A stretch of 64,000 nt of DNA, taken from NCBI GenBank assembly GCA_004431415.1, contig QPMI01000151.1, forward strand, positions 1 through 64,000. The letters are read 5' to 3'. Shown piece after piece: positions 1-47,790 of this stretch. The position numbers and the translations under genes were made by a program. The stretch comes from Cyanophora paradoxa CCMP329. Taxonomy: Eukaryota; Plantae; Glaucophyta. A model generated the notes under the pieces. That model ran no database searches and had not been told where the DNA came from. It saw nothing but the letters and a program-made list of their open reading frames with translations. The number at the start of each line of letters is the position of its first letter. The first letter of the stretch is position 1.

Positions 1-492
1 CCAAGGCTGCCAAGACCCGAGGTCCTGGCTGCGGCCCGCCTCTGCGGCCTCATCCCTGGCGGCCCGCAGGCACCGTCCTACAACGCGGTCCCCCCGCCGT
101 CGAACTCTGTACCCGTCGCTCCGGCGCAGCTACAAACCGCCCCTTGCAGGAACTGCGGCGAGCACGGCCACCACGCGTCGGCGTGCACGAAGCCGGTGCG
201 CTGCTACAACTGCGGAGGGGAGGGTCACACGCAGAACCGCTGCCCCAGTGGCAAGCGCCAGCACGACGGCGGTCCCCCACACGGTCCGTCCCCGAAGCGT
301 GGCCCCGATGGTGGTGCTGGCGGCGCAGGAGGCGGCGGCACCGTGGTGGCCATCGCGGCGGTGGCAGGGGCGGCTACCAGAGCGGCGGTGGAGGCGGCGG
401 CCAAGGCGGGACGGGATCTAACGCCACCCTCCTCGGCAATCCCGCCCGAGCAGCCCGCTGGCCCCGATGAGCGCGCCCGACTGGCCCCTTGA
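1..492 (+). CDS. gag: Gag C-terminal part with two CCHC zinc knuckles (5'-partial)
   Basis: Frame 1 is open from base 1 and reads CRNCGEHGHHASAC then CYNCGGEGHTQNRC (145-243), two CX2CX4HX4C motifs. TGA at 490-492. Confidence 0.85.
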   Translation, partial: PRLPRPEVLAAARLCGLIPGGPQAPSYNAVPPPSNSVPVAPAQLQTAPCRNCGEHGHHASACTKPVRCYNCGGEGHTQNRCPSGKRQHDGGPPHGPSPKRGPDGGAGGAGGGGTVVAIAAVAGAATRAAVEAAAKAGRDLTPPSSAIPPEQPAGPDERARLAP

Positions 493-545
493 CGCGCCCC
501 GTTGCGCGCCGCCGCTCTCCGACGCTCGACCGCTGGCCCGTTGTT

Positions 546-668
546 GACGCGCCGTCTTCGCGCCCGGCTGGCCCCGTCACTGACGCGCTGCCTTCGCGCC
601 CGACTGGCTCCGTTGCTGACGCGCCGTCTCCGCGCCCGACCGGCCCCATCGCTAACGCGCCGCCCCCG
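546..668 (+). repeat. 36-bp coding tandem repeat, ~3.4 units
   Basis: DAPSSRPAGPVT / DALPSRPTGSVA / DAPSPRPTGPIA / NAPPP; units start at 546, 582, 618 and 654. Confidence 0.85.
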
Positions 669-3600
669 AACCCTCGCCCGACTGACCACGGAGACGCCGT
701 GCAGTCCGGTGGTCCTGACTCGGGCCGGGAGACCGAGGCTACGACGGACAGCCTGGCCATGGTACCGATCGCTCCGGTGCAAACTGTCCCGATCACGCCG
801 ACGCAGCCCTCGCATCGGACATCGCGCACTTCGTTCGGGACGTCAACGCCACGACGGCACGCAGCCGGTAACGTCGCGGCGGAGAGGACGGCCCCCGTCC
901 CGTCGCCATCCCGTCGCTGAACCCGCGTCGCCGTCCCCTCGTCGACTCACGCGACCGGCCCGTCGTCGCCGGCCCGTCTGACTTGTCGACAGAGATGGAA
1001 ACGGGAAGCCGTACTGCGGCCGAGTCCCGTGTTTCCAATTCGGTGTGCGCAGCCCCGGCGGGCGTCACTGCCGGCAGTATCCGCGACCTCATCAACGCTG
1101 GCCTCCGCCGCACGACCACACTCGCATGTCCGCCGCCTTGGCTCCCGTCACGTCCAAGAAAACCCCGCTCTTCACTCGAAACTTTGGCCGTATGCACCGC
1201 CCGCGCCCGAACGCCATCAATCCGTCGCCCGCGTCGCAGTCACGAGGTCGCTCACCTTCGCGGCCGCCCCCTCGGCGAAGAGCACGAACTCCGACGCTGA
1301 CTCTGTGCGGGAGCCGAAGACCCGGACGTACTGCGCCCTGGGGACCCCGTCACAGAGTCGCCGATGGACACTGCACTCGGCCCGCTAACCTCCAAATCGA
1401 GCACCGACTCCCCCGCAGCCACCTCGCAGCAGGAGGGAACGTCTCGAAGGAAGTGGGCGGCCGAACCCGAACTACAAGGCCCCGCCGCCAAGATGCCCGA
1501 AATCGACTCGCTACCGGCGGTCGAGGGCTGCGAGTCCTTGGTACCCCTTTGCACTGACTGGCTCGACAACGTTGCTTACAACATGCACACTCGCCGTGTT
1601 AACAACCGCATGCACGTCGACGGCATCCAGTGCACTGACTGGCTTCGTGATGGCATCCCTTCGAGCGACCAGCGCCAGATCCACGCGCGTACCATCCTTT
1701 ACTGCCCGCCCTCCAGATGCTCACGACGTACCTCGAGCCGAAGGGCCCCGGTGTCTGCTGGCTCGCGTCCGCAACGCTATCGATGCGGAAGGCGACTCGG
1801 AGGAGGCGCGCGCGCACCGCTTCCCCAAGCCCCACGACAACATGTACCCCGTCTTCACGCAGGCCTCCAATTACCGTACCGCGGTATTCACGGAGGATGC
1901 GCACATGCCTCGCCGTCGGGACCTGTCTTTCGCCAACGAGACGTGTGCTGACTGCCACCCCCATGTCGTCGGCCGCCAGGAGAATGGTACCCTTGTTGCC
2001 CGCCCCATTCCCTCGGCACACCGTCGTGACGCGCCCAATGACGGACTTCGTACTGCTCACTCCGCGCTCATCGCTGCGCTTGAAAGCCTCCCTACGTCGC
2101 ACCCCGTTCGTGACCCGACCAGGGAGATGGAGTTCTTTGTGATCGCCCGCGACATCTCCGGACACGCGAAGAACGGGCGGTTCCCGATCCGCCGGCGCTC
2201 GACGTGAACCCCGGCATCCCGTGCGCTGACGCACTCACGCTCACCACAGCACCCGCATTGGCACTTGCTGGCGACCCGCCCGCTCATCAACCCGAAAGCC
2301 ACAGTGAGCACAAGCGTCTGAATGCGGCCGTCACACGCATCATTGCAGACACGGCCACTGAGGATGACGTGACAACGTTGCGCACGTGGATCGCAATCGC
2401 CCGTGAGACGACGACTATCGCGGCAATTAACACTAACATCTCGAACACCAACGAGCAGCTTCGCCGCCCTACCGGGGCTGAGGGCGAGCAGCTGTTACAC
2501 TTGGTTGAAATGGCAGCGATGGCCATCACGAACACGGGCGCCCCGCCGCCTCGCACGCGGCAGGCTGCGGCCAACCACGTCACGAGTGTACTGCGTAAGG
2601 AGCTCGAGGCATTCGATGTTGACACTACGGTTCAGGCAATCGTCAACGCTCTGTGCGCCCGTCGTGTCTTCACTTCACCGACGGCGCCATGGACACAACC
2701 GACGCGCCGCCTGCACCTACGACAACGCTGACGCTCCCAGGAGTGCTGTCGTCGAGTCCCTCCTGAACCGTGTCAAGACGTCCTTCACGACGCGCGTAAC
2801 CGCAGCCCAACATTCATGCGCCCCAACCGACGAACGGCCGCTGTCAATTACGTTGAGAGCACACTCCGCACGTACCTCCGTGGCTACGACGTCGAGTCTA
2901 CGATCCTACTTCTCGTCTACATTCTCGAGCGCGAGGTGAGCTACGTTCGCCTCAGGCCCTGACGCGACTTCGGCAAAGGCTGCTGACGCCTACGCTCGTT
3001 TCGTCGCGGCAAACGCTCCGACCGACCCCGTCGCCGGACCCAGCTCTGTCGCGACGGCAGAGGGCCTCGCCCTGAGGACAAGACGCCAATCGTCCCGCCG
3101 ACCACGCCCACTCCACCCGCGCCCGCCGTACTGCGGCCCAAGGCGTCGGAGGACAGGGCTGACAATGACCCCATCAACCGCAACCGAAGTTGCGCGAGAT
3201 GCTGATGGACATTGCGGAAGACTCGATCACGCTCATCGCTCGTCGCCACCAGGCAGCGGGAGGTATGAGCGCGAGGGTGGAGACCGCGTCTTCGCCTCTC
3301 GCACGGTCGAGAAGATCATGGTCAGTGTTGGGGACAGCAAATTCTTCTCTTCCTGTCGCCAGTCGACATGCCTGCACCGTGCCACACGTGCAGCATCGGC
3401 CCGATGGCTCACCCGTCATCGTGAACCACCGGCTCCGTGCATCAGTGATCAGCATTGCGCACCGCTACTACGAGTACATCGACTCGACCACGGGCAACAC
3501 GGTGACAATGACTAACGTCGAGCTTCAGGAGCACTGCCGCCTCTGCACAACGCCGCCGTACATGGAGTTCGTCCGCAATTGCCCCGTACCGTCGCCAACC

Positions 3601-4778
3601 TCACGCCAGCGCACGCCGTACCCGAGTACTCTGCGACCTGACGATGCACCGGCGGACATCACGCTCGACGCTCTGTACGGAGTGACGATGGAAATGAAGA
3701 CGCTCTTCCTGCGGATTATCGGTCTGTTAATGGATATCACCCCACAGGGAACGACGTCTTGACGGGGAACGACGACTGGCCTCGGGTCGCTGACATCTTC
3801 CTTAACGTCGACGTCGGCCCCTTCACCGTCCGCGCCAGCACCCTCCGGCCTGGCGTTCGCGACGCGAGTACTGGACCGATAGGCACTCGGCCAATCATTC
3901 TCGCCCCGGAGTTGTCAACACCTCTGGGCAGGACACGTCCCGACTCGCGCGAACGACTGTGAACGCGTCGCTTCCCGTCTGCTTGTCGGCACCGGCGTTC
4001 TACCATGCTCACGCGTTAATGCACCCCGTCGATGAGCCGAACACGCGCCTCGCCCGACACCAACTGATCTTCTGCCCTACCCGGTGCCTGAGACCACGGT
4101 CGCTGCAGCTGGGGAGTGAGCCGCAGTTGGCGTCGATTTACGTCGCTGCCGTTCTACACGACTGGCCGGCTCGACAGCGGGACAAGATTAAGCCGCATCT
4201 CACTCTCCGAACCAACGACGTCGACATGGAGTACTTGCGACTCGCCGCCGAGAACGCGCGACTTCGGGACCCGACGCAGTTTTCGGCGAGGTACCTCGAG
4301 TCCACAACGTGTTGACAGACATCCTTCGTCGCCGCACGCCTGGAACGCCGTCCCCGACCACTCCGCCCGACAAGCACGCGCAGCTGCTGGCCGACGAACA
4401 GCTCGCACGTGAACTGCAGGCTCGCCTCGACGCCGAAGCTGCCAAGGGAGAGGACCGGTGCAGGCCGCGGCGCAAGCCCCCTACTTGCAGGCTGCAATCG
4501 GTGGTATTGCTCGTGCCGCACCATGGACGCCCGTCGCCGTACTGCGGCAGCACAGGCTCCACCGCGCCAATCGGCGAGGCACGGGGAACGGTCAGGGGCC
4601 GCGCCGCGCGCTCCCGATTCATACCAGCCGGCCCCAGACCCCGGGCAACCCTCACTACCACGACGACGACATGACGTGCCCAACGGCACCGGTGACACCG
4701 CCGACCGACGCCCCGGAGCCCCCGGCCCCGCGGAACGACCCACCCCCTGCGCCCGAGGTGACGGCCTCGTCGACGGAC

Positions 4779-4857
4779 ACTCCGGACGCCCAGCCCGTTG
4801 CACCCGCGACGACGACTCCGGACGCCCAGCCCGTTGCACCCGTGACGACGACTCCGG
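4779..4857 (+). repeat. 36-bp tandem repeat (2+ units)
   Basis: TPDAQPVAPATT / TPDAQPVAPVTT / TP; units start at 4779 and 4815. Confidence 0.85.
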
Positions 4858-5696
4858 TGGCCCCGACGCCCGCTCTCGAGACGCGGTCTCGTCGACGGCC
4901 GCTCGAGATGCTTCGCCCATCGCACCGGCGATGGCGACCTCGCTGACGACCCCGCACAGCGTCCCGTCCCCACGGCCGTGGCTGCGGTCTCGACGGCCCC
5001 GTCGCCTGCGCCTGAGCTACTGGCCCCGTCCGACGCCCCGCCAGCCCGGCCACGACTGTGACGGCGGCCCCGCCGCAGAGCCCGCCCAACCCCCGATGCT
5101 GCCGATCCCGTCACTTCACCCGACTACACTGCACCGACCGACGCGTCGATGCCTGACTCGACGACTGCCGACTCGTCGGGCACTGAGAGGACCGAGGACG
5201 TGCCCATGGGCGACCCGCGCGTTTCGAGGGGGATCATCGTCGACACGCCGACCTTGCCGAGCCCTCACGACGACCGTGACAGTCCTCCTGACACCGACGA
5301 AGACATGTCCAGCGACTCGGAGCCCGAGATCAAGGACGTGGCCGCCGACCTTGGACACCGCCACGCCTGGACGATCCTTCGCCTCAAGCCCGTGGTGCAC
5401 AACCAGCTGCGTGCGTACCTGGACACGCCGCGACGCTTCATGGTCACAACGACGACGACGGATTGGCGCAAGACCCCTGAGACGCCGACCCTCTTCGCCG
5501 CCAGCGAGCTCACGAGCTGCATGCACCTCGCAGCTGCCCGCAGCAACACGCCTACTGGGCAACCGTTGCTGGGTACTCGCCCGAGTGACCAGGCTCACTA
5601 CCTCCTTCAACATCTGACCGAATTCCGCTCCGTCATCCACGTCATCATGCGCCTCGCGCGGGCTCAGCCCTTCGCGCCTGGGGAGACGGCGACCAC

Positions 5697-7160
5697 GTGG
5701 CCTCACCCGAACGACCGCTCGCCGATGTCCTCGGACGGCCAGAGATGCTGGAGCTGTTTGGTTTGACACCGACAGAGTTCACTCTTGTACACCAGTCCAA
5801 GACTCCAGTCGTACCGTGCATCCTTCAGGTGGCTGTCAACCTTGCCCGCAATCTCCGGACGCTGCACTACGACGTGGAGATGACGGAGAGCGATGAACGG
5901 TTCTTGAACTTCGACAAGATCACGAACACGGCGACGCGCCTTGCAACAATCAGGCAACTGGTCCAAACTGTCAAGTTCACGGCCCCGCTCACAGGACCTG
6001 ACGACATCTATCTGTCTACGCTTCGACACGGTTCACCGCCGCCCGACATCGCCTTGTCGATGCGTTCGACGGCCCTGGCGCGGGCGTGGGACATCGCTGC
6101 ATACTTCGACCATTACAAGTGGGACGAGACGCGCGACCGCTACGGGGATAGCCGATTTGCTCACCTCTACGACGTTCGTGACCCAGCACCGAGCTCCGAC
6201 CGTCCATGGCCGACGAGTCACGCGCCGTTGCTGTCAATGCTCACCGAGCAAGTCGAGAACGTACTCCGCCTCGTCAACATCACAGCCGACGTCGAGGGCC
6301 CCGGCAACTTCCTGCGCCGTTACTACACGTCCCGTTTCAACCCGAAATCCGACGCGAACCCGGCTACGAACCTGCGGGCGACCGCCGAGCTCGCGGAGGA
6401 GATCCGGCTGAACAGCCAGTTAGCAGTGGTCGCGGCACGCGATGTCCATCGTCTGCGCACGCCCCCCGTCAGCGAGTCCGACCTACACCACTGTCTTCGG
6501 CACGGACTGTCCCGTCACCGCTCCGGCGTCCTCCCCTCAAATTTCACGAACGTCGTCGCCGCGTCTGTCACGGAGACGACTGCGCTGGCAAGGCTCGCCG
6601 AGCTACATGACACCACCGTTGTCGCGATGTCAATCACTACGTTCATGCACAAGCGTCAACTCGCCAAGAAGGGCAAACCGATCCGTCTCGAATCGCGACT
6701 GCACGCCCCCGTCTTCACCCCGAAGCAGCCCGAGCCAGCTGTCGAGCTCTATTACAACTCTGACCGTTACATAATGGTGCACCCTGAAGAGGCGGCGCTC
6801 CTGGCGTGCAAAACTGCGTGGCGCTCCCATATCCTCCAGCTGACTCTCGAGGCCATGCGTCGCGCGTACAAGCTCGAGACGGAGTCAAGCACTCGTACTG
6901 CGAGCAAGCTTGCTTTCGGCCTCGTCGCTCGACTCGACACTGCACTTAGCAAGGCTACGACCACCCAGCGCTTGGCGGTAACACGGGCCTTCCTCCTGGA
7001 CGCCGAGCATCGATTGAATCTGTTCTACTGCATGCTTTACCCGCGCTACCGCGATCACCTACTCCCTGTCCTCCCCAGTCCGATGGTACCCGTCACCGAC
7101 CCTCTCGCCGTCCCGGTCCCACGGCCCCTGAGCGCGACGTTGACGAGTACGGATACCTGA
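5697..7160 (+). CDS. Hypothetical, probably helical protein segment of the retroelement (487 aa open frame)
   Basis: Longest clean ORF in the spacer, with globular-type composition. No motif recognised. Confidence 0.6.
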   Translation: MASPERPLADVLGRPEMLELFGLTPTEFTLVHQSKTPVVPCILQVAVNLARNLRTLHYDVEMTESDERFLNFDKITNTATRLATIRQLVQTVKFTAPLTGPDDIYLSTLRHGSPPPDIALSMRSTALARAWDIAAYFDHYKWDETRDRYGDSRFAHLYDVRDPAPSSDRPWPTSHAPLLSMLTEQVENVLRLVNITADVEGPGNFLRRYYTSRFNPKSDANPATNLRATAELAEEIRLNSQLAVVAARDVHRLRTPPVSESDLHHCLRHGLSRHRSGVLPSNFTNVVAASVTETTALARLAELHDTTVVAMSITTFMHKRQLAKKGKPIRLESRLHAPVFTPKQPEPAVELYYNSDRYIMVHPEEAALLACKTAWRSHILQLTLEAMRRAYKLETESSTRTASKLAFGLVARLDTALSKATTTQRLAVTRAFLLDAEHRLNLFYCMLYPRYRDHLLPVLPSPMVPVTDPLAVPVPRPLSATLTSTDT

Positions 7161-9806
7161 CACAGTGGACGTCGACGGCATCGACATCTTGCCTCGCGTT
7201 CCTGACTGGGATTCCCTCGTTGGACTTGTCGACGACATGAGCAAGGACACTTTCTGGAACTCCAACACGTACTTCGGGCTTCGCGCCCGCGCTATGGTCT
7301 ACGGAACAGAGCGCAAGCGCCCCCGCGAGAAGCGACCGAATGACGAGAAGTTGCAGAAGAAGGAGCGCAAGGCCGCCCGGCTCACTCCCGAGGAGGTCGA
7401 CTCCATCATCTCCAGAATTTTGAGCGAACTCCACACTGTTCCTTTCAAGGAGGTGCTACTCTCGGAGAACGCTGACATTCCTGACGTCTATTTCTGGGCC
7501 TTCCTCAACGAGGAATGGGCGAAGGGCTTCACGGTCGTCGACGGCGCTGGCTACCAGCACGGAGTGTGGCCGGATCTGAGCGGCGTGATGGTCCGACGGG
7601 AACCGCGACCTGATTCGACGGAGAACGAGCGCGACACGTTCTATGCGGGTTTTGGACGGCGCAACAATCACATCAACGGGGAATTATTCGCCCAAACGAT
7701 CAACGACTGGTACCCAATCCGTCTCCACAATCCTCGCCCCCACTCCCGTACGGCATGCGCACATACAGCCCCGAGGAGACGCGAGCTGGAGGTGACTTCC
7801 TACCTCTGGATACTGATCCGGGACGGGATACCTCCTATCACATCTTCATGACACCGCTTCTCTTCACGAACACGGACTTCCTGGCCACAGCGTACTGCAA
7901 AACGATCCAGGAACATGGGCGACACGCGCCCCACATCTTCGCCGTCGCGGCTCACATCCTCGGAGGCCCAGCCCGTTCGGACAGACGGCTGATCTGACCG
8001 AGGAGCTCACTGTGGAGGACGGGCACAGACCGGAGGAGCTCCCGGAGCCGCCGCCGGTCGAAGAGCTGGAGGGAATCCCGACTCGGGACCCACCCCCAGT
8101 TCATCCCGCCACCACGACAAAGAAGTACATGCACGTCCTAGGTGAGGTCCACATGCCATACGTGCTACTCGGCGACTCTGTCTTGAGGCATTTCTCCGGC
8201 GCGTCCCGTACATGCGCCCATTCCTCATGAAGATGCACGTACGCTGGTCGAACTTCTCGCGAGCACTCAGTCGTGTCCTACGCTACGGCGTCGGCCCGGC
8301 ACCTACCCGTACCGCGCCGGTGCTCCCGGCCATGGCGAACTCAGCCAGCACAACCGCGCGGGCCTGCCCTTCCGATCGTTCCTGATCACGGCCGCCGACG
8401 AGTTCCACCCGGCCAACAAGTATGCCGACTACTTCGACTGCATCTACGACGAGGACAACCACGCGCACCTCCGTGACTCCGCTTCACGTCAAGATGTCGA
8501 ACGATGCTTCTACGAGATTGCCATGCCCGACGACCTCAACGCGCCGCCCATGACTCTTACGCCGGCCAATGCTGACCTGTGCGGCCCTCGAATCGTCCGA
8601 TTCACGCACGTTGCACCGGCCGGACCCAGCCGCGGTGCCCCCAACACGATCCAGAACCGCTCGCACATCACTATCTTCGACGCGAACAACCGGAACACCT
8701 GGCAGCAGATCATCGCGGGCACGAGGAAACCCCAAACGAGGCGGCGGGCCGCACCCGTGCGGCCCCGACCCCAAGTACTTCCCGGTGTCCGTCAATGACT
8801 ACACTGGCCCTGGGGGCGTCGTCGTGTCTCTGCGTCGTCGCGGGCCCACGGGCACCGCGCCTGCAACGCCCCCGTCGTCCACCAGGTCCTGGGGTTCCCG
8901 CTTTCGGTACACACTTGGGTGTACGGAATCGCAGCGTACCTGGCGGCGGCAGTCAAGCTGCACGGTGCCTTGTCGTTCTTCCTCGAGCCCCTACCGGGGA
9001 ACTCGGGAACATCATCATCGACTACGTTCGTAGCCACGAGGATGAGCTGCACTTCCGCTTCACGGCTTCAGGCGAAGTGGCGCGCAGTGCCAAACTCGAC
9101 AAATGGTACGAGGTCGAGTACCCTGACTGCGAACGCGTCGACCCGGCACATTTAATCACAGCCTTCGAATCCCTACTGCACAAGGCAACCAACGACTGGT
9201 TGGCGGTCCAGATCAAGCACGAGACACCCCGGCGGCTCGCGAAGATGTCGACATGGATCGAAACCACTGCTGGCCCGTAGCATTCCGACTCCCGGATGGA
9301 GTCATCAACGCACTCAACGCCCAAGTCCGGGGCGCTGACTTCGATCCCACGAACGATCCGTCACACCCGCATCGTCCCAGTGTCTATGACGTCAACGCGA
9401 GCGCAGTGCGCAACGCTATTATGGATTTCGAACAGCGATACGCCGACATACACGAGCAATTCCGTCACGCCGAATATGGCAACTTCACATTCGATCCATT
9501 CTACAATGAATTCGGCGCCGCCATCTTCAGTCGCGAACCGCAGGCGCGGGCGCTACTCCACGGTTGGTTGGAACAATTCGTTTACAATCACGCCACCGTC
9601 GACGCGGCGACGAGGCGGCCCATCACGTTCACTAGCCGCGAAGCCTACCGGGCGGTACAGATCGTCGACGTCCTCCCCTGCGTCACTCCCTGGGCGATCC
9701 GGACAACGACAGCCTCCTTCGTCAGATCCCCCACATTTACATTGGTCACGGCCCCCACGGCGCGCCTGTCGACCCGTACGAAGGCCGCACGCGCTTCACT
9801 AACATC

Positions 9807-12032
9807 ATGAACTACATCACTACGACGAAGGCAGAGGAGTCGCGCGCGTACATTTGGGACCCGCGCCTCGACGGCAAGATCAAGCTCGTGGGCACGGACG
9901 AGTACATTCGTCGGAACCCTGGGATTGCGCGCAAGCCCTTTGTCCGACCCTTCGTCGTCTGGTCGACCGACTTCAAGGATCTGCGCACCAACGAGCCGAC
10001 GGGACTGGCACGCTTCGGTCACATCCAGGGTGTTGTCTTCAAGCCATCTGGCAGTAACAGGCCTCCGCGTCGTAGTCCTACGGGGACCGAGACGACGGGA
10101 ACCTCTGACGGCGACGACTCCAGCTCGGACAGTGGTGGCTCCACCGCCGAGTCCGTAGCTCCATCGGAGACCCCGTCGGCCGGGACGCCGAGCCTAGCCT
10201 CGCGCGTGCAGTCGTCCGCGTTCGCCCCCCACGGCCTCCTTGGACCGCTCACACGGCAGCACACGTACACGATCGCATACAACGACCTCACTAATCCCAG
10301 GACGTCGACGGATCTCACGATGGGCTGCTGGCTCCTCTACTCTGGACGGGGACCGGACTACGAGCGGATCACGTCCGCGCGATACCGTGCCTTCGAGGAC
10401 CCTGAATTCGCTGCCAGTTATCACTTGTACGACTGGTCGCCGCTTCAGCGGTCTCACCAACTCAACGCCCACGCAATCCTGGAGACGCTCCACGAGATCG
10501 AGAACTTTCGGTGGGATTTCACAACCTCTCAGGGCCTGTCAGCCGACCTCGCTTTCACTCGCGCCTTGTTCACTCGGGCGGCCTTCATCCTCAATTCAAT
10601 CGGCCTCGCGGCGTGGGACGTGGTCCTCCACAATGACTTCCGTAGTCATGACGCTCAACGGACACGTTTCTACGAGCGGCACGTACTCCAACGCGACACG
10701 CGCCTCCGCCACGCTTGGCCCCAACTCGTCAAATATCTCCGGGCGTCTCTCTCGCGCCACCGCGAAGCCATCCCGTTCCGATCCCCCGGAGAGCCTGGCT
10801 ACCGGCCGGCTGAACGACGGGATGGCGCAGCGGGGACCGAAGTTGACGCGATCAACGAGATTCACTATGGCTGGCCCAGCAACCGCCACCTCAACAAGCT
10901 CGCAAACGCCGACTGCAAGCCCATCCTTGGCGTCGGATACTTTTCAGCCACAATGCGCAATCACCGGCCCCCGCTGCGTCTGTCGGCAGCTCCCTGCAGG
11001 GCACGCCCATTCGCCGCGACGGACGTCCTCATGAACGTGCACAGGCGGACAACCACGCGGAAGCGACCTCGCCTCAAGCGGACGGCACCGCTCCCGCCAG
11101 CCAGCGTCATCTCCGGTTCGACACCGTGCACACCGTATGAGCAGAGCTACCTCGCCTCGCTTCGCGTCTGCGCGGCACGCATGTTGGGATTTGACGACGT
11201 CGAGGACCCCCTTGACGTTCCCCTCTTCGGCGACGGCGGCCCGTCAGTACCACACCCCATTGCGCGAATGACGGACACGAACCGCACGCTCAGAGAGCGC
11301 ATCAACGACGGCCGAATCTGCGTCAACTTGCACATCGCCGCTATCGATCACCGACGACAAGTCCTTCAATACCTCCTCACCAAGGCATTGGTGGATACAG
11401 GAGCCGCTGCGGACGTACTCGACGGCAGTATCGCCGACAAACTGCCAGGCCTTCGCTACAGCAACGCTCCGCGCGTGCACCTCACCGGCTTTGGAACGGA
11501 CATGACTGCCTATGCGCGCATCGCATTCATTGCAATTAAGGTTGGTCCGGTCACAATTCCGCGGAAGGTCCTCGTCGTCGCGCCTGGTCTCATGGGCAAC
11601 ACTCCAATGCTACTCGGCCTCACAACGCTGGTGGCGCTCAACGCTCACATCGTGCTCGACCCAGCAAATTGGGGAATGACGATCACGTCGCCTGACTCCT
11701 CGGATGGCGAACGATTCCACGTCCCTTTTCGGCTGCGGGCCAGCACGACGGCGGCGTTCTGGTCCGATTGGCGAAGGACATCACTGTACGGCCGGGTGAA
11801 TCGCTCGTTCGATGTTACATGCCACAAACGACTTCGAACACGACTCTCGGCGCACCGGAAGTCCTCCTCACTCCGCCACCACTCCTCCTCGACGACGACG
11901 GCTTCGACGGAGCCGACGAAGTCGAATTCTTGGTGCCATACCAAATTCACCGCAACCCAGCACACGGCACGTTTTTCGTGCAGATCTGCAACCCTCACAG
12001 GCGGCCTGTCCGCCTGCGAGCCGGAACTGTGA
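9807..12032 (+). CDS. pro: Unknown N-terminal region fused to retropepsin-type aspartic protease (coding probably leaves this frame near 11729)
   Basis: ALVDTGAAADVL (DTG at 11394-11402), flap-like LTGFG and closing MLLG motif. Confidence 0.8.
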   Translation: MNYITTTKAEESRAYIWDPRLDGKIKLVGTDEYIRRNPGIARKPFVRPFVVWSTDFKDLRTNEPTGLARFGHIQGVVFKPSGSNRPPRRSPTGTETTGTSDGDDSSSDSGGSTAESVAPSETPSAGTPSLASRVQSSAFAPHGLLGPLTRQHTYTIAYNDLTNPRTSTDLTMGCWLLYSGRGPDYERITSARYRAFEDPEFAASYHLYDWSPLQRSHQLNAHAILETLHEIENFRWDFTTSQGLSADLAFTRALFTRAAFILNSIGLAAWDVVLHNDFRSHDAQRTRFYERHVLQRDTRLRHAWPQLVKYLRASLSRHREAIPFRSPGEPGYRPAERRDGAAGTEVDAINEIHYGWPSNRHLNKLANADCKPILGVGYFSATMRNHRPPLRLSAAPCRARPFAATDVLMNVHRRTTTRKRPRLKRTAPLPPASVISGSTPCTPYEQSYLASLRVCAARMLGFDDVEDPLDVPLFGDGGPSVPHPIARMTDTNRTLRERINDGRICVNLHIAAIDHRRQVLQYLLTKALVDTGAAADVLDGSIADKLPGLRYSNAPRVHLTGFGTDMTAYARIAFIAIKVGPVTIPRKVLVVAPGLMGNTPMLLGLTTLVALNAHIVLDPANWGMTITSPDSSDGERFHVPFRLRASTTAAFWSDWRRTSLYGRVNRSFDVTCHKRLRTRLSAHRKSSSLRHHSSSTTTASTEPTKSNSWCHTKFTATQHTARFSCRSATLTGGLSACEPEL

Positions 12033-15000
12033 TTGCGGAGACTGAATTCGGGACTTGGCCGGAGTCCGAATTCCGTCCACACGAGAATGTCGAGACCTAC
12101 CCCAAGGGGTGTTACAGCTCCTGGACACCTCAACAACAACTGACATTCCCGATCTCTTCCGTAGCCGCGCAAATCTATGAGAACTTCAAGCCTGTTGTCG
12201 TACCCCGACGCTCGCAACCACGGCGCTACATCTCCCGAGCCCGACGCCTCTACCCGGAGGTCTACCACCGACGACCGCCCGAACCCAACTGCAAGGAGGG
12301 CGAGGCGGCGCATGTTGGCTCCGTCGATGCTGCTGCCGACATCCCGCTATCCCACGAGGCCAGCGAGCGTCTCATGTCGTACGTCGCACGTGTCGTCACC
12401 CCTTACACTGCTCGAACCGGCGATCACTTCAACGACAAGGAGCTCATGGAGCTGGCCAGTTTCTTCGAGCCTCACTTCGCCCGCTTCGACTCCGAGCCGA
12501 TGCTGGTTGGCCCCGCAGTCGGCCCCACGGTGCCCATCGCGTCCGTCAATGCCGACGCTCGAATGGAGCCCCCGTCGAGTGACACTGCGCCTCCTACAAA
12601 GCCATCGCCCGAGACCATCAAGGCGATGGTGGACGCCCTGTTGAAACCATCGGAGTCGAACCCCGACGCCCTTCCCGAGGATCGCACTCAACTCCAGAAC
12701 CTTCTCACGCAACGCCAGCACTGCTTCGCCCAGAACATCAATCCACGCGAGCTCCTGAAGTACAAGCACAGCATCCGACTTCTGCCCGGCGTCCCCGCCA
12801 AGCACCTCCCGCTGTACACCGTCCCTCGCCGGCTCTCTCCGCCTGCGGAGAAGGCTGCGAAGGCGGAAATCGAGAAGCTGCTACGCGACGGTCTCATCGA
12901 GCCTTCGCAAGCTGGTTTCGGCAGCCCCGTGGTGCTGGCACCGAAGAAGGATGGCACGATGCGATTCTGCGTCGACTACAGGAAGCTCAATTCCCTCACG
13001 GAACGTGATGTCTTCCCGTTGCCACGCATTGAGGACCAATTGGAGCGCCTACAGGGTGCGTCCACGTTCTCGACTGGCGACGCAACGTCGGGTTTCTGGC
13101 AGTTGGAACTCGACGAGGAGTCACGTGACCTGACGACATTCATCGTCCCCTGGGGAATGTACAGGTGGAAAGTGACCCCTTTTGGTATCACGAACGGCCC
13201 AGCGGCGTTCTGTCGAGCCGTGACGTCAATTTTGGGCAACCTTTTGTCCACCTGCGTCGTGGCGTACGTCGATGACCTCACGGTCCACTCGCCGAACGTC
13301 AAACAACACCTTCTCGACCTGGAGGCCTTCTTCGCTGCGATCGACCGCGGTAACCTCAAACTCAAGCCCAGCAAATGTCGTTTCATGGTGCGGGAAGTCG
13401 AGCTGCTCGGATTCCGTGTCAGCAGCGACGGCATTCGCATGGACCCCAAGAAGGTTGAGATCATCTCCAAGATCACGGCGAACGAACTCCAGACTGTCGA
13501 GCAACTCCGCAGTTTCCTCGGCCTCACGGGCTTCTACCGGCGCTTCGTACAGAGTTACGCGCGACGGGAACTTTCCCTGCGAGACCTCCTCACGGACGCA
13601 CTACGAGCCGACCGGCTCAACTTGGTGTGGAATGACGAGGCTCTCGCTGCGTTGGACGACCTCAAGAAGGCGATGTGCGAGGACATTGTGCTGATGCTGC
13701 CCGACTTCACGAAGCCGTTCATCATTTACACGGACTGGAGCAAACGGGCCATGGGAGCGGTGCTCATGCAGGAGGACAAGGACGGCCGCGAGCGCCCGAT
13801 CGCATTCATCAGTCGTACTCTGACAAACATGGAGCGCAAGTACCAATCACCAACGGAGGGCGAATGCATTGCGGTACTCTGGGCGGTTAAGGTCTGGCAC
13901 CACTACTTCGTCTGCGGCCACCCGTTCACGATCCGCACGGATCATTCGGCGTTGCAATGGTTGAAGACACAGGAGCTGGCGAACAACAAGACGCTTGGGC
14001 GCGCGGCCATCGCCCTCAACCACTACAACTACACTATCGAGTACCGCAACGGGCGGTCGAACGTCGTTGCGGACTGCTGCTCTCGCCTTGCGGAGACACA
14101 CGCAGTGTACAAGCCTGGCGGCGCTGACGGCACTGACATCACGACTTCGATACCAGACGGCGCTCACGGGTTCGGTGTGCCCGATGCGGGAGACTACGAC
14201 GATCCACGCGAACTCTACCGCGTCGCCATCCACCGCACCTCCTCGGCCCTGCAACATACTCTGGACGGGCCGGCGTGGATCCCTACTGGGGATAGACGCC
14301 GCGCCACCACGCGACCCGAGCACCTTGCCCCGGCGCCACCGCGCCGAGACCGCGACGACCCTCAGACTTCACGGCGACGTCCAAGGTCGTTGACGCCCGA
14401 CACTCAGCGAGTGCGTGACATCGTCGAGAACGGCGGCCTGGAAGACGTGGAGTCCCAGATCACGCTGGAACGGCTCCACGAGAACGGCGCCCTCTCTGCC
14501 CCCGACGTCGTACCCATGGAAGTTGACACGCCTGCACCGGCCGCAGCGGCAGACGAGGCGGGCGCGACGGCCCCTCCTGCACGGCGACGCCGCGGGGTGA
14601 CGAACCTCGAGCATACACTCGACGGCGCGGCCTGGCTACCGGCCGAGGGTCGCCGCCGCCGACTTCAAGTTCGAGGACAGGAGAGCTCCGCTGACGGGCT
14701 TCAAGCTCGAGGACGGGAGAGCTCGGCCCGGAGGCCTCGGTCTCAGTCACCGGAAGGAGGGGGAGGGGGTACAGACGAGGAGAGCGAGCCGTCAAGACGG
14801 AGCACGGCTTGGAGTGTCCCGCGCCAATACCAGCGACGGCTTGAAAAGGACTACGCTGACCGCCTCGCCAGTGATCGCGACAGACGTTCGCGTGCGGCCC
14901 GAGATCTGCACGAAGCCTCGCGGGAGAGGACGGCGACGACGCTCGAACGGCGACGCCAACTGGCAGAGATGGGCCGTACCCCGTCTGAGATCGACGCGCT

Positions 15001-15675
15001 CGTACCCCTGCCCTCTGTTCGGAACCGAACCCCGGAGGAGCGGCGCAGACGGCGACAATCCCGCAAGGCGCTGAACGCCAAGGCATGCCCCGTACCGCGG
15101 GTGAAGCCTCCCAAGGGCAAGAATTCACGGCAGTCTCGATATGCCATTGCGCCCCCGTCGCATCTCGACGTTGCTGACGAGGAAGAGTACATGCACTTCC
15201 TGCAGCAAGAACGTGACCTCGGTCGTCCGCGACCTGATCCCACTTCTAGCAGCGCTATCGCCCCGCTGGACGAAGGTGAAGGCGCCCAGAATGAGCCGAC
15301 ACACGTTCGCTTGCCGCGTGGCACCGTTGTCATGGACACCTGGAGCGAGGGCCCCCGCCCCCTCGTTGACGTTCCTCCGCCACCGACGATCCGTGAACTT
15401 GTTTCCGATGGGACCGCGGTCATCATGGCTCAGGCTCGTGACCCTCTTTGCCAGATGGTGTTCGCACTTCTTCGCGAGAAGGAGAACCTGGCGCGCTGTC
15501 ACTCCCACTACACTGCTGGTGAACGTGACCCGGAGGTGCTTGGGAGCTGCATTCTCTGCAAGTCTGCACGCGATCGCTTCGCTCGTGAAGCTACTCAGTA
15601 CACGATCGATGAGCAAGATACCGTACTGCGGTTGCCCTTGCTCCCCACTATGCGGCCTCAGATCGTTGTACCCCA
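11726..15675 (+). CDS. pol: Pol: reverse transcriptase and RNase H, followed by a long low-complexity linker
   Basis: SPVVLAPKKDGTMRFCVDYRKLN, DATSGFWQ, PFGITNGPAAF, YVDD (13265-13276), LRSFLGLTGFYRRFV; RNase H IYTDWS...E...RTDH...NVVAD. Confidence 0.95.
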
Positions 15676-16929
15676 GAGTGGCGGGAGAAGATTGTTCACG
15701 CTTACCACGATGACTGGGCTCACCGTGGTGCCCCCATTGTTGCTCGGCGCATCGCCTCACGGTTTTGGTGGCCGGGCATGACGACTGCTGTCCATCGCTA
15801 CGTGAAGACGTGCCGACACTGTCAGTTTGCCAAGGCTCACAAGAAGCCGAAGTCACAATTCACTGTGATCGAGTCTGAGCATCCTGGCGACTTGCGTCAA
15901 GCCGATCACTTCCCTATGGCGCCCTCTGAGAACGGTCGACTTCACCGTTTCACACTTGTGCACATTGACGTCGACGCTTTTACCAAGTACCCTGAGATTT
16001 TGATGCTGACGGAGGCTGATGGTCGTGCCTGTGAGTGGGCTGCACAAACTGTGTACGCGAATCACGGCCCTTGCAAGCGGTATCTCACGGATAACGCCAA
16101 GGTCTTCACGCCTACTAGTCTCTGGGGCAAATTCTGGACTCGCCAGGGTACTCGGTTGATTTACGCTCCCACGTCCCACCAGTCCACGAACGGCGGTGCT
16201 GAGCGGCTTGGTGGCATTTACAAGCGCTTGGTGTATGCTCTTTGCGATGAGAACGGGGAGGACAATTCCCATTGGCCTTTCTATCATTATCGCGTGCTCT
16301 TCGCTCTCCGGACCACGATTCACGCTGCCACTGGTTTTTCACCCGCCGCTCTGCACTTTGGACGAGAATTGATGTTGCCTGGCGATCTTCGTCTCGACCT
16401 CACCCTGCGCGAACCTCACGAAGATCCCGTTTCTCTCTACGATTACGCTTTGTCGGTCGCTCGAGCCGCCCGCGACCAAATCTCTGCCGTCCGAGAACAC
16501 CGCAAACTTTACAACAAGAAGTTGCTTCGCTATGGCACTGGCCGTGAGCCGCATCGTGTTTTCAAGCCTGGTGACAAAGTGTTGTGCTGGATTATCAGCG
16601 CGAAGACCAGTAACGTCAAGCGCACTGGGCCTCGCAATGGTTGGACTGGCCCTTACACTGTCACTGAGGTTCACTCTCACGGTCTTTTGTACACTGTCCG
16701 AGGCGATGACACTTCACTGGTGTATCGCTCGCGCGAGGTTCTCATGCACGTTGATCTCATGATCGCTTTTCACGAGCGTCCTGCCAATGTTCTCGCTCCC
16801 CGCAAAGCCGGTCGCCCTCGCAAGGCCCCCGTGCCTGTGCCGCCCGATCATGAGGTCCCCGTGCCTCCGCCACCTGCCGTTGATCCCGATTCACTTTCCG
16901 ATGATGACACGACGGATGACGAGTCTTGA
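15676..16929 (+). CDS. Integrase (HHCC zinc finger, DDE core, GPY motif, C-terminal AT-hook-like motif), -1 frame relative to Pol
   Basis: The frame upstream of the track's 15778 start reads EWREKIVHAYHDDWAHRG...RFWWPGM...CRHCQ. Core motifs are ADH, TDN and NGGAER, followed by WTGPY and RKAGRPRK. Confidence 0.92.
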   Translation, partial: EWREKIVHAYHDDWAHRGAPIVARRIASRFWWPGMTTAVHRYVKTCRHCQFAKAHKKPKSQFTVIESEHPGDLRQADHFPMAPSENGRLHRFTLVHIDVDAFTKYPEILMLTEADGRACEWAAQTVYANHGPCKRYLTDNAKVFTPTSLWGKFWTRQGTRLIYAPTSHQSTNGGAERLGGIYKRLVYALCDENGEDNSHWPFYHYRVLFALRTTIHAATGFSPAALHFGRELMLPGDLRLDLTLREPHEDPVSLYDYALSVARAARDQISAVREHRKLYNKKLLRYGTGREPHRVFKPGDKVLCWIISAKTSNVKRTGPRNGWTGPYTVTEVHSHGLLYTVRGDDTSLVYRSREVLMHVDLMIAFHERPANVLAPRKAGRPRKAPVPVPPDHEVPVPPPPAVDPDSLSDDDTTDDES

Positions 16930-18049
16930 ATCACAGCCCGTACTGCGGTTTACCGGATTCACTTCCGTTGTCGATGACGTGCCCTTCACTGGGATGTGGC
17001 TTGCGAGTTTCGGGAATTCTCTCTTGGCGCTGGGTCAGCGGCTGATCACTGCTGCCTGGTTTGCCCTCAACCAAATGCGCAGCTCTACATCTCTTCTGAT
17101 CCAGCCGCGTGGAAGCGTCTGTGAGGACCTGGAGAGCTGTTGCCGATAGGGTTTCCTAGCCGTTAGTGCTTCGTTTGCACTTCGTTCGCAGTAGTACCGT
17201 GACTTGACCCGCGGCTTCTCGCGATTTCCTGAGTCACTGTACCCCTGTACGAAGATGCGACCCTAGCTACTTTTTCTGACTCTAGCTTGATACTTTCCGG
17301 TAGCCGTGTCCTAGGGTACACAGTAGTCTGTGATTAGCAGCTTTCTCTTGCAACGTGACAGCCTGCTCGCCTGCTGCTGGTACGCTACGGGAAGGTTGCT
17401 AAGGTCTACTGGGACGTATAAAACCTCCTAAAACACTCCTCCCGGACTCGTGGTCGTACCCGTCGCCGGCTTGCCGAGCCTACGGCTCCTTCTACTTCCC
17501 CCCGGCGGTTTGCCGGGCCGGACCCTCCGGCCTTTGTTCTTGATACCGGACTGCCGCCTTTGCCTTCGTCTTCTGCTTCGCTGGTCGCGATCGTATCCCG
17601 CCGGCGCCGGCGTACTTCTTCGTCTTCTAGTTTAGTTCGGTCTGGTTCGGATTCTGATCGTAGTGTTGATGCTAGAGTTAGTTTCAATACTAGCTATAGT
17701 CCTCGTGCTCGACCTGTTGTTCGCCGTCGTTTGCAGTTCGATTGCCCGCCTCGAGCCCGGCCGGCTTTAGTGATTCCTTTGACTGTCCTTTTGCCTGCTC
17801 TTGATCCGCCTGCTCCGCCTCCTGTGTCCTCCTCGACCTCGTGCCGTAGCTCTGCCCTTTCGCATCGTCCTGCTTCGCCTCCGCCTCCATGTCGTCTTGT
17901 TGTTCCTCTTACTTGTCTTCTTCCTGTTATTTATCTTTCTCAATTTTGTCCCCCGCTTCTTAGTGATGTAATTCCTTCTGATATTGATGGTATCTCTAGC
18001 TCTGGCTCTTCTTCGTGTCAGTTATCCTCTGTCCCTAGATCTGCTCGAT

Positions 18050-18246
18050 TTATCGTCTCTTCTCGCTATCGATCTGTCTCGAGCTCTGTGTCTTTCCTTT
18101 TTTATTGTCGATTTTGGCTCTTTGTCTTATCTTTCTTCGTGCTCTTGTCTTAGTTTTTTTGCTTTTTTGTCTTTATGCCCCCTGGGCAGCCCCCGCAGTG
18201 CTGGTGTCTAGAGACTGTGGCCGGTAATTCACCAAAAAAAAAACCG
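18050..18246 (+). repeat. 3' terminal segment of the giant element (reference copy of a dispersed repeat)
   Basis: Pyrimidine-rich tract then GCCCCCTGGGCAGCCCCCGCAGTGCTGGTGTCTAGAGACTGTGGCCGGTAATTCACC(A)10CCG. Homologous to 47791-47844, 52666-52828 and 58346-58483. Confidence 0.85.
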
Positions 18247-18863
18247 CGGCACTAATTATAACGCCGCCAGCTGGCGCCGCCGCGGCCCGCCGGCCGCCGC
18301 CGCGTTATGCTGGTAAACGGTTGCGATCAAGATTTCGCTTACCAAAAAAAAGATCTCTATATACTATATAGCTGCAATATTTTCCATACATAAATCATTG
18401 AAATCTAACGACTAACCGCAGGACTTGCGCGCAGGCTCGCGGCGGCCACTGCAGCTGCAGTTCCAGTTCCGCAGCGCCCGTCCCCCCGCGCCCCTTGTCC
18501 CCGTGCGCGCGCTCCACGCCCGCACGCCGTCCCCCGATGTGTGCGCTCCCCGCGCCGCGCTCCCTCCGCGGCCCCCCGCGCCCCGGCTCTGATGCCCCCC
18601 GCGGGCCCCACCGGTCCGCCGCGCCCCTTGCCCATCCTCAAGCCCCCCCGCCGCGCTCCTCGCCTTCCCCCCCCGCCCTCGGTGCGCGCCCGGCGACCTT
18701 CAAAATCCAATCCATCAATCGATGCGCTTCCGGCTCTATAGCTAGATCTGCTCGCTTTTGTGGATACCCATGATATTTACCGGCCATGCATGTGGCGAGT
18801 AGTGGTGCTTTTCGAATCTGACCGGGCCGCGGCCGGGCCGGCACCCGCGCCGGGCGATCGCAG

Positions 18864-21800
18864 CTGCCGCACACGCTGAAGCTGGACGACCACTTCGACT
18901 GCGGCGAGCTGCGCCGCCTCGCCGACGCCGGCAGCGCCGTGCGGCCCGGCCCGCCCCTAAATATGATGCTTATGCTTGCATGCGCAGCCATAATACGATG
19001 CTTATAATTATTATGCTTGCAGCTATATATAGTACGATAGGCTCTCTAAATACAAAGCCTGCGCCGCGCGACCCGCCCCGCGAGCCATGCAGATGGCTAG
19101 CGCACATAGGCAGCCCCTTTGGTGCTGCAGCTGGTGCCCAGTGACTGTGGCTAGCGCTGGTGCCGACACGCGGCTCGGCGCACGCGCGCGCAGGTGGCGG
19201 CGCGGCTGCTGGTCTGCCGGCGCCACTGGGACGCCGGGTTCGCCCTCTGGCACGCCGGCCGCATCGCCGAGGCGGTGCGCTGGGTTAATGTTGGGAGCTG
19301 GATCAGAGCTGCAGCAGCTGTGCAGGAGACCTAGGCTTAGGCCTAGGGGCCACCCTCGCTGATTGTGATCGCGATTGCCGGGCCGGCAGGTGCCGCACAT
19401 GGCGTGCGAATTAAAACCTGCGCCGAGCGGCCCGCCCCGCCCCTTAATATGATGCTTATAGTTAAAGCTATGCTATGATAGGCTATGCAGCTGCGCATGC
19501 GCAGGAGATACTCTAAATTAAACCTCGCTGATAGCGATACTGATTGCCGGGCCGGCAGGTGCCGCACATGGCGTACGCGGTGAAGCGCGAGAGCTGCGTG
19601 GCCGTCGTCCCCCAGCCCCTCGAGGGGCGCCTCCTCGTCCGCCCGCGGCCGCCCCCTAAAGTTAATTAGAGAGAAGGAAGTTAAATTAGCGCTCCTACCT
19701 AAGGCTCCTACCTGGTCCGCGAGTATTATTTATGTATCGAGGGCCGCCTCCTCGTCCGCCCGCCCGCCCCCTTTCTTGATATCGATAAATATATCCACTT
19801 GAACGTTATAATTAGCTTCTCCTCGTCGTTATAATACGTTATAATAACTTGAGGGCGCCTCCTGGTCCGCCCGCCCGCCCCTCCCGCCCGCCCGCCCGCC
19901 CCGCCCCCTTAAGCTCTCTTGATATGCGTCCACTTGAACGTTGACTTCCGCCCGCCCCTATCGCCCGCCCGCCCGCCCGCCCCGCCCCTTAAGCTCTCTT
20001 GATATGCGTCCACTTGAACGTTGACTTCCGCCCGCCCCCTATCGCCCGCCCGCCCGCCCGCCCCGCCCCTTAAGCTCTCTTGATATGCATCCACTTGAAC
20101 GTTGACTTCCGCCCGCCCCCGCCCCCCCCCGCCCCCCCCCCTATTCACTCAACCTTCTCGTGATCATGATCGATTCTCGCTTCTGTTGTTCGCGCAGTCG
20201 GAGGTGCGCGGCTTCGCGAGGGAGAACCCGAACGACCCCGACGCCGTCGCTCTCCTCTGCTGCCTCGTGCGCCCCGGCCCCGCCCTCCGGTCTATAATTA
20301 GACGCACAACCTCGTGGTCGGCTGCCTCGTACGCCCCGCTTCGATCTATATTTAGATGCACAATGCATTTTTTCCTTCCGGAAAGCGCCCGCGCCCGTGC
20401 ACGTCGGCAGCCACCTGGTCATCTCGCTCCGATCGGCGCCTCGAGACGGCTCACGGCGCGCGGCCGCGTGCGCAGGACCCGCGGAGCCGGAGCGCGCCGC
20501 TGGTGGCGGCGCAGGCGCGGCGCGCCCTCGCCCTCGCCCCGACGACTGGGCCCTCCACTCGTCCGTCCGGGCCCCGAGCCCCCGCCCCGCCCCGCGGCCC
20601 CGCCCCGCCCCGCCCGCCCCGCCCCGCCCCGCCCCGAGAGAATTTTGAGAGAGGCGCCCGGCGCGGGGCCGCGGTCGCGGCTGACCGCCCGCCCGCCCTC
20701 CGGATCCGCGGCGCGCGCAGGCTGGCGGCGAGCCTGGTGGTCTTCGCTCAGGTCCGTGCCCGCTCGATCGCTCGCGAGCTCTCCAGGGCAGCCGCGTCTC
20801 GCTCTAAATCTCTAGATCTGCTGCCTTCCTCGTATGAAATGATGTTTTACTTAAAGAGACGACGTCATCGAAATCGACGATGCTTTCAATAAGAAGGGGC
20901 CAGCGCCCGCGCCTGACAGCAGGGCCGCGCAGGACTTTGCGGAGGCGGCGCGGCTCCTGCGGCGCGCCCTCGCGCTCCTCGGCGGCCCCGGGCCCCGAGG
21001 CCGACGCCCCCACCGCCCGCCCCTCCTCTTCTTCCTCGGCTCCGCGTGCGCCCCACAAATATTAATGACCACAACTTTATAGCTGCAAATTAGCTGCGTG
21101 TACAATATCCCCCTAGGTCCCAATCAGGCAATACCTTGACCTGTGAGATTATAATAAGCTAGCGAAGAAGAGCTAAGCGGCCTTGAAGAAGAACTAAGCC
21201 CGTGCCCAACTTGAACGAGATACACGAGTTCTAATCACGCGTGTTTCGCGATCGCAGGGAGTCGCGGGTGCCGGGGCGGCGGGCCGAGGGCATCGCCGCC
21301 CTCGAGTCGTACGTCGCCGTCGCCTCCCCGACGACCGGTGCGCCCTTATATTTGATTGTAAGCTAAAGAAAGCTTGAGGGTCATTGACGCTCTAAAGAAA
21401 GCCTCAGTTCGAGAAATCAGAGGGCTAGGGAATTTATAATATATAACGTTAACATGAATTCCTTGGCGCAGGGAGTTTGCGGAGGGGCACTTCCAGCTCG
21501 CGTACCACTGCATGCAGGAGGCGAGATCTAGATGCCGCCTCCGATGCCGCTTCTTCTTCTTATTTCGAGGGTCGGCATCGCTGATCCGCTGTTGAACGTT
21601 GACAGGGGCGCCCCGCGGACGCCGTCCGTTGGTACGAGAAGGGGCTGGTGAGCCCCGCCCTCGACACTGACTTCCTTATATACATAATTTGTTATCCTAT
21701 GCAACCTTCCCTTATGATAACTTATATAATGGAGCTGGTGAGCCCGGGCATGGCCCCCGGGCATAATCCTTGAGCTTTGCGGCTGGCGTATACAATCGCC

Positions 21801-45086: not shown

Positions 45087-45438
45087 GCGGTTGCGAGTGT
45101 GCGAGTTCATGAGTTCATAGCCTGCATGACCCGCATTCAAATAAACCCACTGCCGGCGCCGGGCTCGAGCTTTTCAGTCTGCATGACCCGCGTTTTAAAA
45201 AACTGTTTGAACCCACCGCCCGGCTCGGGCTTACTGAAATACCCATCTGCAGGTTGCAATTGCCCTTCGAATTTCCGTTGAGATCTAGATCTAGATCTGA
45301 TGATCTCTGCACTTCAGCGCGCAATGATCGCGAGGTCGAGGCACAATCGCGAGTCGCGGACTGTACTGCGGCACATGTACATGTTGTCTGTCCGACAAAT
45401 TTAAACTATGACTAATGCGCCAAACTGCAAGTTTGTTT

Positions 45439-47163: not shown

Positions 47164-47790
47164 CGTGCCAGCCAAGCACGCGATCGCTATTACGCGATCG
47201 ACTTTTATTCCATCAGATGGCAAGTGGGGCGGAACTGGAGACGAGAGGAGAGGAGGCCGGGCACGAGGAAAGAGACGGAGGTGGTGGGGGGCGGTGGGGT
47301 GGTGCGGGCCGGGGGCCAGAGAGGATACCGAGAAACACAAGGGGCACGGGGTACTCGTCTGGAAGAAAGGAAAGGGGGTATACGTAGTACGGGCCTTGAC
47401 GGGGGAGCGACAGCGCTAGCGAGCTCGACGGCGTGCGCAGTGCTAGCATGCGCGCATGTGCAGACAGTGCACTGCGGCAGTACAAACGGCCTGCGCGACC
47501 CTCATGAAAAATGGGAACATGGGAACTTCACATTATCGATGATTTAGCGATGTCTTCTAATCATTTGAATCACCCTCCCCTGGCTGCTGAACCTTATAGT
47601 ACAGTATTAATATCATAGTATTAGCGGCGACCGTCGGACGCCGCGCGTGCTTCTGCGCTCCCTTCGAGCAATTCAACTACCCCTCCCCTCCCCCCCCCCC
47701 CCCTCCCCCCCCCCCGGGCCTCAGGTTTAATAGTATCAAAAACTTTAGTACTCAGGCCTTGGAACTTTATACCCCACCTTGCCTGTATAC

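Follow-up and report, generated by a model that had tools for sequence, protein, structure and literature searches.

A ~195-bp terminal unit of a Cyanophora paradoxa Ty3/Gypsy retrotransposon, possibly an LTR or part of one, and its dispersed copies

A unit of ~195 bp that stands at the 3' end of a Ty3/Gypsy element of Cyanophora paradoxa was found in four copies (A, B, C and D) in the window, by which the whole 64-kb stretch of GC-rich eukaryotic DNA that was analysed is meant. Our preferred reading, held tentatively and put at somewhat less than even, is that the unit is a Gypsy LTR or the terminal part of one, and that the copies are LTR-derived fragments, at least one of which was captured by end joining. 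Under this reading the unit would be either a whole, short LTR or the R-U5-like terminal portion of one that is longer, the Gypsy family would move whole by its own integrase, and the three short copies would be LTR-derived pieces rather than products of a separate transposition mechanism. Copy C would be a piece of DNA or cDNA from the element end that error-prone end joining placed in a broken chromosome; copies D and B may be solo LTRs that have decayed, terminal repeats of a non-autonomous relative with another body (segment X, below), or further captured fragments. The conserved 3' core of the unit would be the part needed for replication, with the T-rich 5' part drifting between subfamilies.

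The Gypsy element and its terminal unit

The element that carries copy A is a Ty3/Gypsy retrotransposon. Its partly degraded polyprotein region of Ty3/Gypsy type (1–16929, +) keeps the order Gag knuckles, protease, RT, RNase H and integrase H2C2. The element begins before the window, which opens inside Gag, with zinc knuckles at 1–489 (+). Reading frames follow for the aspartyl protease (9636–12029, +), for the reverse transcriptase and RNase H (11696–15778, +; Pfam RVT_1 and RT_RNaseH) and for the integrase (15613–16929, +), which is directly observed and has the Pfam Integrase_H2C2 zinc domain with D98, D160 and E197. From the Gag knuckles to the protease, ~9 kb (within 1–9800, +) are open in shifting frames and gave one weak Pfam match, EAD10 at 2114–2728 (E 9.5e-5; 22.8 bits against a cut-off of 24.1 bits).

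The integrase gave a 41% alignment over the rve region of the C. paradoxa homologue P0004, in which D98, D160 and E197 are kept. Pfam rve is not called for the core: the window copy and P0001 gave no match, and P0004 scored 31.4 bits where the cut-off is 32.6. In this family the integrase core is too divergent for Pfam rve, though D, D and E align. The closest relatives of the frame, at most 68% identical, were found only among EukProt gene models of C. paradoxa, and a search of viral contigs with the integrase returned nothing. The younger relatives are the models tig00000480_g1292, tig00020510_g9903 and tig00020904_g15143, with an integrase that is 68% identical or falls in the same 90% cluster. 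Since its catalytic triad is intact, the integrase argues for insertion of double-stranded cDNA with defined, repeated ends, and LTR-type transposition of the whole element by the integrase would be the default expectation. The original prediction had suggested that the element itself might move by a non-canonical route; because the integrase keeps its zinc domain and all three catalytic residues, LTR-less movement of the whole element is unlikely.

The 1.3 kb from the integrase stop (16929) to 18246 show no recognisable coding sequence. An open frame of 243 codons within this interval (17422–18150) was considered as a gene and treated as non-coding; it gave no homologue of 134–425 aa and no Pfam match. 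Just past the element end, at 18258–18308 (+), GC-rich repeats of CGC type lie between 7-bp inverted arms (ATAACGC and GCGTTAT), and a second ...TTACC-A8 motif that resembles the unit tail lies at ~18339–18352, ~100 bp past the element end.

The four copies and their ends were observed directly. Copy A (195 bp; 18052–18246, +) is the 3' end of the Gypsy element and lies 1.1 kb past the integrase stop; copy B (~100 bp; ~47745–47847, +) has clear homology at 47791–47847 and a weak 5' part; copy C (162 bp; 52827–52666, −) has a 5' end that is set by an empty site; and copy D (153 bp; 58498–58346, −) has the 3' terminus of A. That four copies of one end are present, as had been claimed, is real and exceeds chance by far: 3 matches to a 17-mer of the unit terminus were found in the 64-kb window against 0.17 expected, BLAST E-values among the copies were 1e-12 to 2e-21, and an nhmmer profile built from the four copies found exactly A, B, C and D in the window (E 2e-18 to 3e-44). 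The predicted end positions likewise agree with ours (A at 18246, +; B at ~47844–47847, +; C at 52666, −; D at 58346, −).

By BLAST and local alignment, A 18181–18237 matched D 58405–58349 at 96%, A 18106–18218 aligned with C 52797–52676, and A 18189–18242 aligned with B 47791–47847. Gentler gap penalties were used to extend the 5' homology of C and D. With these, D extended back to 58498 (A ~18069) and C to the equivalent of A 18052, its exact start being given by the empty paralogous site; B, which starts at A ~18148, is the sole clearly shorter copy. The lengths of homology, earlier put at ~55–160 bp, are corrected to ~100 bp (B), 162 bp (C) and 153 bp (D), and the 5' ends are less variable than had been described. 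Since the starts of C and D lie no more than 17 nt apart, the unit is discrete at ~195 bp. A weak look-alike of the core, GGCAGCCCC ... GACTGTGGC, is present at 19105–19152 (+), lacks the T-rich part and the A-run, and is not significant (nhmmer E 0.45). A 19-nt core pattern was searched against metagenomes and found at 16 loci, none of which (0 of 16) had the extended motif; these were taken as chance matches.

The unit has three parts, namely a T-rich pyrimidine stretch, a conserved core (18181–18233, +) and a tail that consists of GGTAATTCACC, an A-run and CCG. The first 42 nt of the core are 95% identical and ungapped among A, C and D, whereas the 5' part is only 76–89% identical with 35–41 gap positions, a contrast typical of LTRs from diverged masters and counted for the LTR reading. 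The core can be folded as a hairpin with a predicted stem CCGCAG/CUGUGG; among the four sequences there were 0 compensatory pairs and a single change of G-U to A-U. At its 5' start, C reads (T)GTCG and A reads TATCG. C may therefore begin with TG, its T being ambiguous with the flank; A begins with TA.

At the 3' terminus (18234–18246, + in A), A and D both end AATTCACC(A)nCCG, the run being A10 for A and A4 for D, which bears out the earlier statement that two copies end identically. Copy B ends AATTCACT-A5CA3 and is without CCG. The three copies A, B and D have the common 3' end ...AATTCAC[C/T](A)n, and as the A-run is common to all three it belongs to the unit. Copy C ends at GTGGCC, equivalent to A position 18222 and 24 nt short of the unit end; the fixed 3' end that had been proposed therefore holds for A, B and D and is absent from C.

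Copy C and its empty site

Copy C lies in a repeat of ~115 bp, here called Y, of which the window has two copies: one is uninterrupted (51072–50958, −) and the other holds C (52908–52608, −). The uninterrupted copy serves as a paralogous empty site, identical to the left flank of C at 67/75 positions and to the right flank at 46/51. The left flank matches the empty site up to ...ACTAAATAT, and the right flank picks up again at GCCTGCTAAAG. Comparison of the filled with the empty site gave no target duplication, and five bases of empty Y (TTCCC) are absent at the filled site. The last bases of C, GTGGCC, overlap the target GCC as a 3-nt microhomology, through which C is joined to a perfect tandem of target sequence (21 bp x2, period 25; 52668–52648 and 52643–52623, −).

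This anatomy was observed directly. From the lack of a duplication, the loss of TTCCC, the GCC microhomology and the 21-bp templated copy, C bears the signature of a fragment joined into a break by end joining of a kind that uses microhomology and copies template. The same anatomy shows that C was inserted neither by integrase nor by solo-LTR formation, and it is not that of target-primed reverse transcription (TPRT). Tested as a solo LTR, C showed no duplication, its last 24 nt were missing and the target was otherwise intact. The capture anatomy was found, by comparison of filled and empty sites, in C only. The original prediction that the end of the element is mobilised by a non-canonical route is thus borne out in part, for C, which is 3'-truncated and attributed to end joining, and not for the TPRT or rolling-circle routes that had been proposed.

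In yeast, Ty1 cDNA fragments are captured at double-strand breaks, with the 3' LTR region as a hotspot, and many captured Ty1 inserts hold nucleotides that are present only in replication intermediates (PMC11372161). Such capture is an established way in which short pieces of LTR ends can arise, and cDNA may have been the source of the fragments in C. paradoxa.

Three further observations were made at this locus. Relative to A and D, copy C has a 6-bp insertion at 52675–52670 (−), by which TGT has become the fold-back TGT-ACA-TGT. Repeat Y is short and AT-rich, with 13-bp inverted arms (AGAAATATTTAGT and ACTAAATATTTCT, by eye), and C lies inside the right arm; Y could represent a fragile site or else a small element of foldback or MITE type. 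A partial Y-like stretch (47867–47900, +) adjoins copy B.

Relation of the unit to the element, copies B and D, and segment X

The whole 64 kb was scanned in 100-bp windows for T of at least 0.40 with pyrimidines of at least 0.70. This T-rich pyrimidine texture was found in three places only, at 17836–18215 (+), inside C and inside D, the latter two on their own strands. In A the tract spans the 5' boundary of the unit and reaches 215 bp upstream of the start equivalent to those of C and D, into the Gypsy tail; the upstream flanks of C and D are of ordinary composition. An internal duplication was considered as the source of the T-rich tract and rejected, as it scored no better than shuffles. 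When A was taken as an insert of its own, no target duplication was found around it. The continuous texture, the absence of a duplication around A and the sense position behind pol together argue that the unit is, most likely, an integral part of the Gypsy 3' terminal region, with some residual probability that copy A only represents a longer member of an independent retroposon family.

Target duplications were searched by comparing the first 6–20 nt past each copy with the 300–400 nt upstream, at several end offsets. None of at least 8 bp was found at A, B, C or D. At B there was just a 7-bp word, TAGTACT, and several equally good 7-nt matches were present elsewhere in the 300-nt upstream flank; the whole window has 30 occurrences of the word, and a stretch of 1.5 kb has 4. 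ARAGORN found 0 tRNA genes and Rfam 0 matches in the units, and no B-box was found. The larger ORFs, which are part of the ORFs of the window, gave no Pfam match to RT or to any other domain, and no Rep/HUH or helicase domain was found in the ORFs scanned. When pieces of the polyprotein were used as tblastn queries, the window yielded no additional remnant of Gypsy coding sequence, and B, C and D thus have no degraded Gypsy body attached. A Fanzor-tail reading was also tried and rejected: the frames scanned held no Fanzor or TnpB domain, and there were no GCA-anchored duplications.

The lack of duplications, of a tRNA or Pol III head and of a LINE argues against TPRT and against a SINE. Of the mechanisms in the original prediction, TPRT is not supported at D, where no duplication of at least 8 bp was found, at C, where there was none of any kind, and at B, where only the locally recurrent 7-bp word was seen; rolling-circle transposition finds neither an HUH/Rep domain in the scanned ORFs nor the TC start and CTRR end of a Helitron, the unit ending instead in CCG. 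From the four copies in the window, TPRT, SINE and rolling-circle movement are all unsupported.

The prediction had also offered that a separate short-element family caps the Gypsy element. Here a non-LTR family (a LINE 3' tail or SINE-like) with a hairpin and an A-run end would supply the cap, B, C and D would be copies 5'-truncated by TPRT, and A would be the longest copy, landed in or just past the Gypsy 3' region. We consider this unlikely, yet several features agree with it: the A-run is common to A, D and B and of variable length (10, 4 and 5+3), the copies begin at different points (no later than 17836 in A, and at the equivalents of 18052, 18069 and 18148 in C, D and B), the conserved 3' core with its possible stem-loop resembles LINE/SINE recognition tails, the unit has neither a CA end nor a polypurine tract (PPT), and the chance of a sense landing within ~2 kb of the integrase stop is estimated at ~0.06, which is not negligible. 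It is opposed by the results above, since no target duplication accompanies A, C or D, the unit has no tRNA, Rfam or B-box head, Pfam searches of the larger ORFs and tblastn revealed in the window no LINE RT that bears such a tail, and C is 3'-truncated; CCG after the A-run in A and D further implies that the tail is not plain poly(A). Nothing found here supports a separate cap: there is no Pol III head and no duplication around A, and the T-rich texture continues 215 bp into the Gypsy tail.

Whether the unit that is integral to the element is also an LTR was judged on several features. That the unit closes the element and lies in the sense direction argues for the LTR reading. Counted against it are a 3' terminus of ...CACC(A)nCCG in A and D instead of CA, as had been noticed before, the TA rather than TG with which A starts, and the absence of a PPT. 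On the last point the earlier observation is upheld at the unit start: no PPT abuts 18052, as judged from purine runs of at least 7 over 16900–18260, which were only GGGAAGG (17389–17395) and the terminal A-run. GGGAAGG is followed by T-TG and, taken as the PPT, would imply an LTR of ~850 bp. The A-run was itself considered as a PPT with an LTR after it, and this was rejected because nothing is shared downstream of the A-run in A, B and D; a reading of the reverse-complemented end as a tRNA primer site was rejected on inspection. No clean solo LTR with a 4–6-bp duplication was seen among the three short copies, the 5' ends of D and B being uncertain. There are, moreover, four copies only, and the 5' end of the element is outside the window. 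Self-comparison gave no second copy of the unit upstream of the coding region within the window, which starts inside Gag; under the LTR reading the unit would recur farther upstream, where the element begins.

Several of these features would also suit a Gypsy family that is truly without LTRs, with a specific A-run terminus and an end that is copied one-endedly: there is no CA and no PPT, the 3' end is fixed in three copies, and no 5' copy is visible in the window. The 5' end of the element is simply off-window, though, and the intact catalytic triad argues for LTR-type ends; to our knowledge there is no precedent for an LTR-less Gypsy element with one-ended copying, and we regard this explanation as very improbable. 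A Gypsy element without a conventional LTR, in which the hairpin, A-run and CCG form a terminus at which RT or repair starts and from which insertion is one-ended, is improbable as well.

Copy D adjoins a repeated segment, X, of ~1.5–1.75 kb. Copy 2 of X (58345–56901, −) begins at the base after the terminal CCG of D, and copy 1 (45439–47194, +), which is inverted relative to copy 2 and 72–80% identical to it, has ~290 extra bases at 45708–45998. Both copies begin at the same base, so that the start is sharp and common to the two, and X then fades out with no sharp 3' end and no poly(A). X gave no Pfam match, and its start has no primer binding site of TGG type, which was counted against the LTR reading. 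Copy B lies ~550 bp past X copy 1 on the same strand, an arrangement with an estimated chance of ~0.02 for three stray copies in 46 kb. The simplest reading of a unit-X-unit layout is a non-autonomous relative with the same terminal repeats, and this layout favours the LTR reading. Against that reading, X copy 1 is without an upstream unit: comparison of the 240 bp upstream of it with the units gave homology that was not significant. A 12-nt look-alike of the terminus, TAATGCGCCAAA, is present upstream of X copy 1 at 45414–45425 (p ~0.03, noticed post hoc). On the other side of D, on the same strand, what look by eye like the final exons of a host gene, its introns rich in C, are present at ~58933–60100 (−); they end ...FARFEK-stop at ~58935, the apparent stop lying ~440 bp upstream of D.

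The junction of D with X may alternatively be a template-switch chimera, and neither reading explains it fully. LINE-made chimeras, of which L1 chimeric retrogenes are examples, are built as such exact end-to-start fusions. In the explanation to which a chimera belongs, the A-run is a retroposed poly(A) and Gypsy RNA was copied by a LINE RT, as processed pseudogenes are, with full-length RNA giving A and short 3'-terminal or R-only transcripts giving B and D. Retroposition agrees with the continuity between the unit and the Gypsy 3' region, with the fixed end at CACC|A, a plausible cleavage site followed by an A-run that varies in length, and with the fusion of the exact 3' end of D to the exact start of X, the same start base being found in X copy 1. 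It is nonetheless hard to credit, given that A and D alike carry CCG past the A-run (a chance of 1/64), that the A-runs are short and target duplications absent, that X is without poly(A) or a sharp 3' end, and that a retroposed RNA of at least 18 kb would be needed for A.

Meaning and comparison with known systems

If the LTR reading is true, the copies would be ordinary retrotransposon debris with two points of interest. The first is a non-canonical terminus, an A-run and CCG in place of CA, in a little-studied lineage, which would bear on what glaucophyte integrases recognise. The second is copy C, a clean natural case, with its empty site preserved, in which an end-fragment of a retroelement appears to have been patched into a break with a templated duplication. 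If the unit is not repeated at the 5' end, the element would be an integrase-encoding one with a terminus of non-LTR type, which would be surprising.

The unit shares with Helitrons one fixed end and ragged opposite ends, and differs from them in having no Rep/HUH or helicase in the scanned ORFs, no TC/CTRR ends and an insertion that is not between A and T. With 5'-truncated LINEs and LINE-dependent SINEs it has in common a fixed 3' A-run end, copies that are short at the 5' side and a foldable conserved core; unlike these, it lacks 8–20-bp duplications and a Pol III head, carries CCG after its A-run and is not accompanied by a partner LINE in the window, and its longest copy, A, is continuous with the Gypsy element. 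Capture of Ty1 cDNA in yeast is an experimental system outside the glaucophytes, and the corresponding anatomy comes here from 1/3 fragments, the one with an empty site. Copy C resembles such inserts in being a short LTR-end fragment with no duplication, a small loss of target, microhomology and a templated duplication.

Compared with the LTRs of Ty3/Gypsy elements (Metaviridae), the unit departs in its 3' end, (A)nCCG against CA, and in the absence of an abutting PPT, and its copies depart from solo LTRs in that no 4–6-bp duplication is present and C is truncated in a target that is otherwise intact, the 5' end of the element being off-window. In other respects the two agree: the unit is terminal behind a gag-pol region with integrase, it is discrete at ~195 bp and has dispersed stand-alone copies, its 3' part is conserved and its 5' part fast-evolving in a U3-like manner, and one of its copies, D, stands directly 5' of the repeated segment X.
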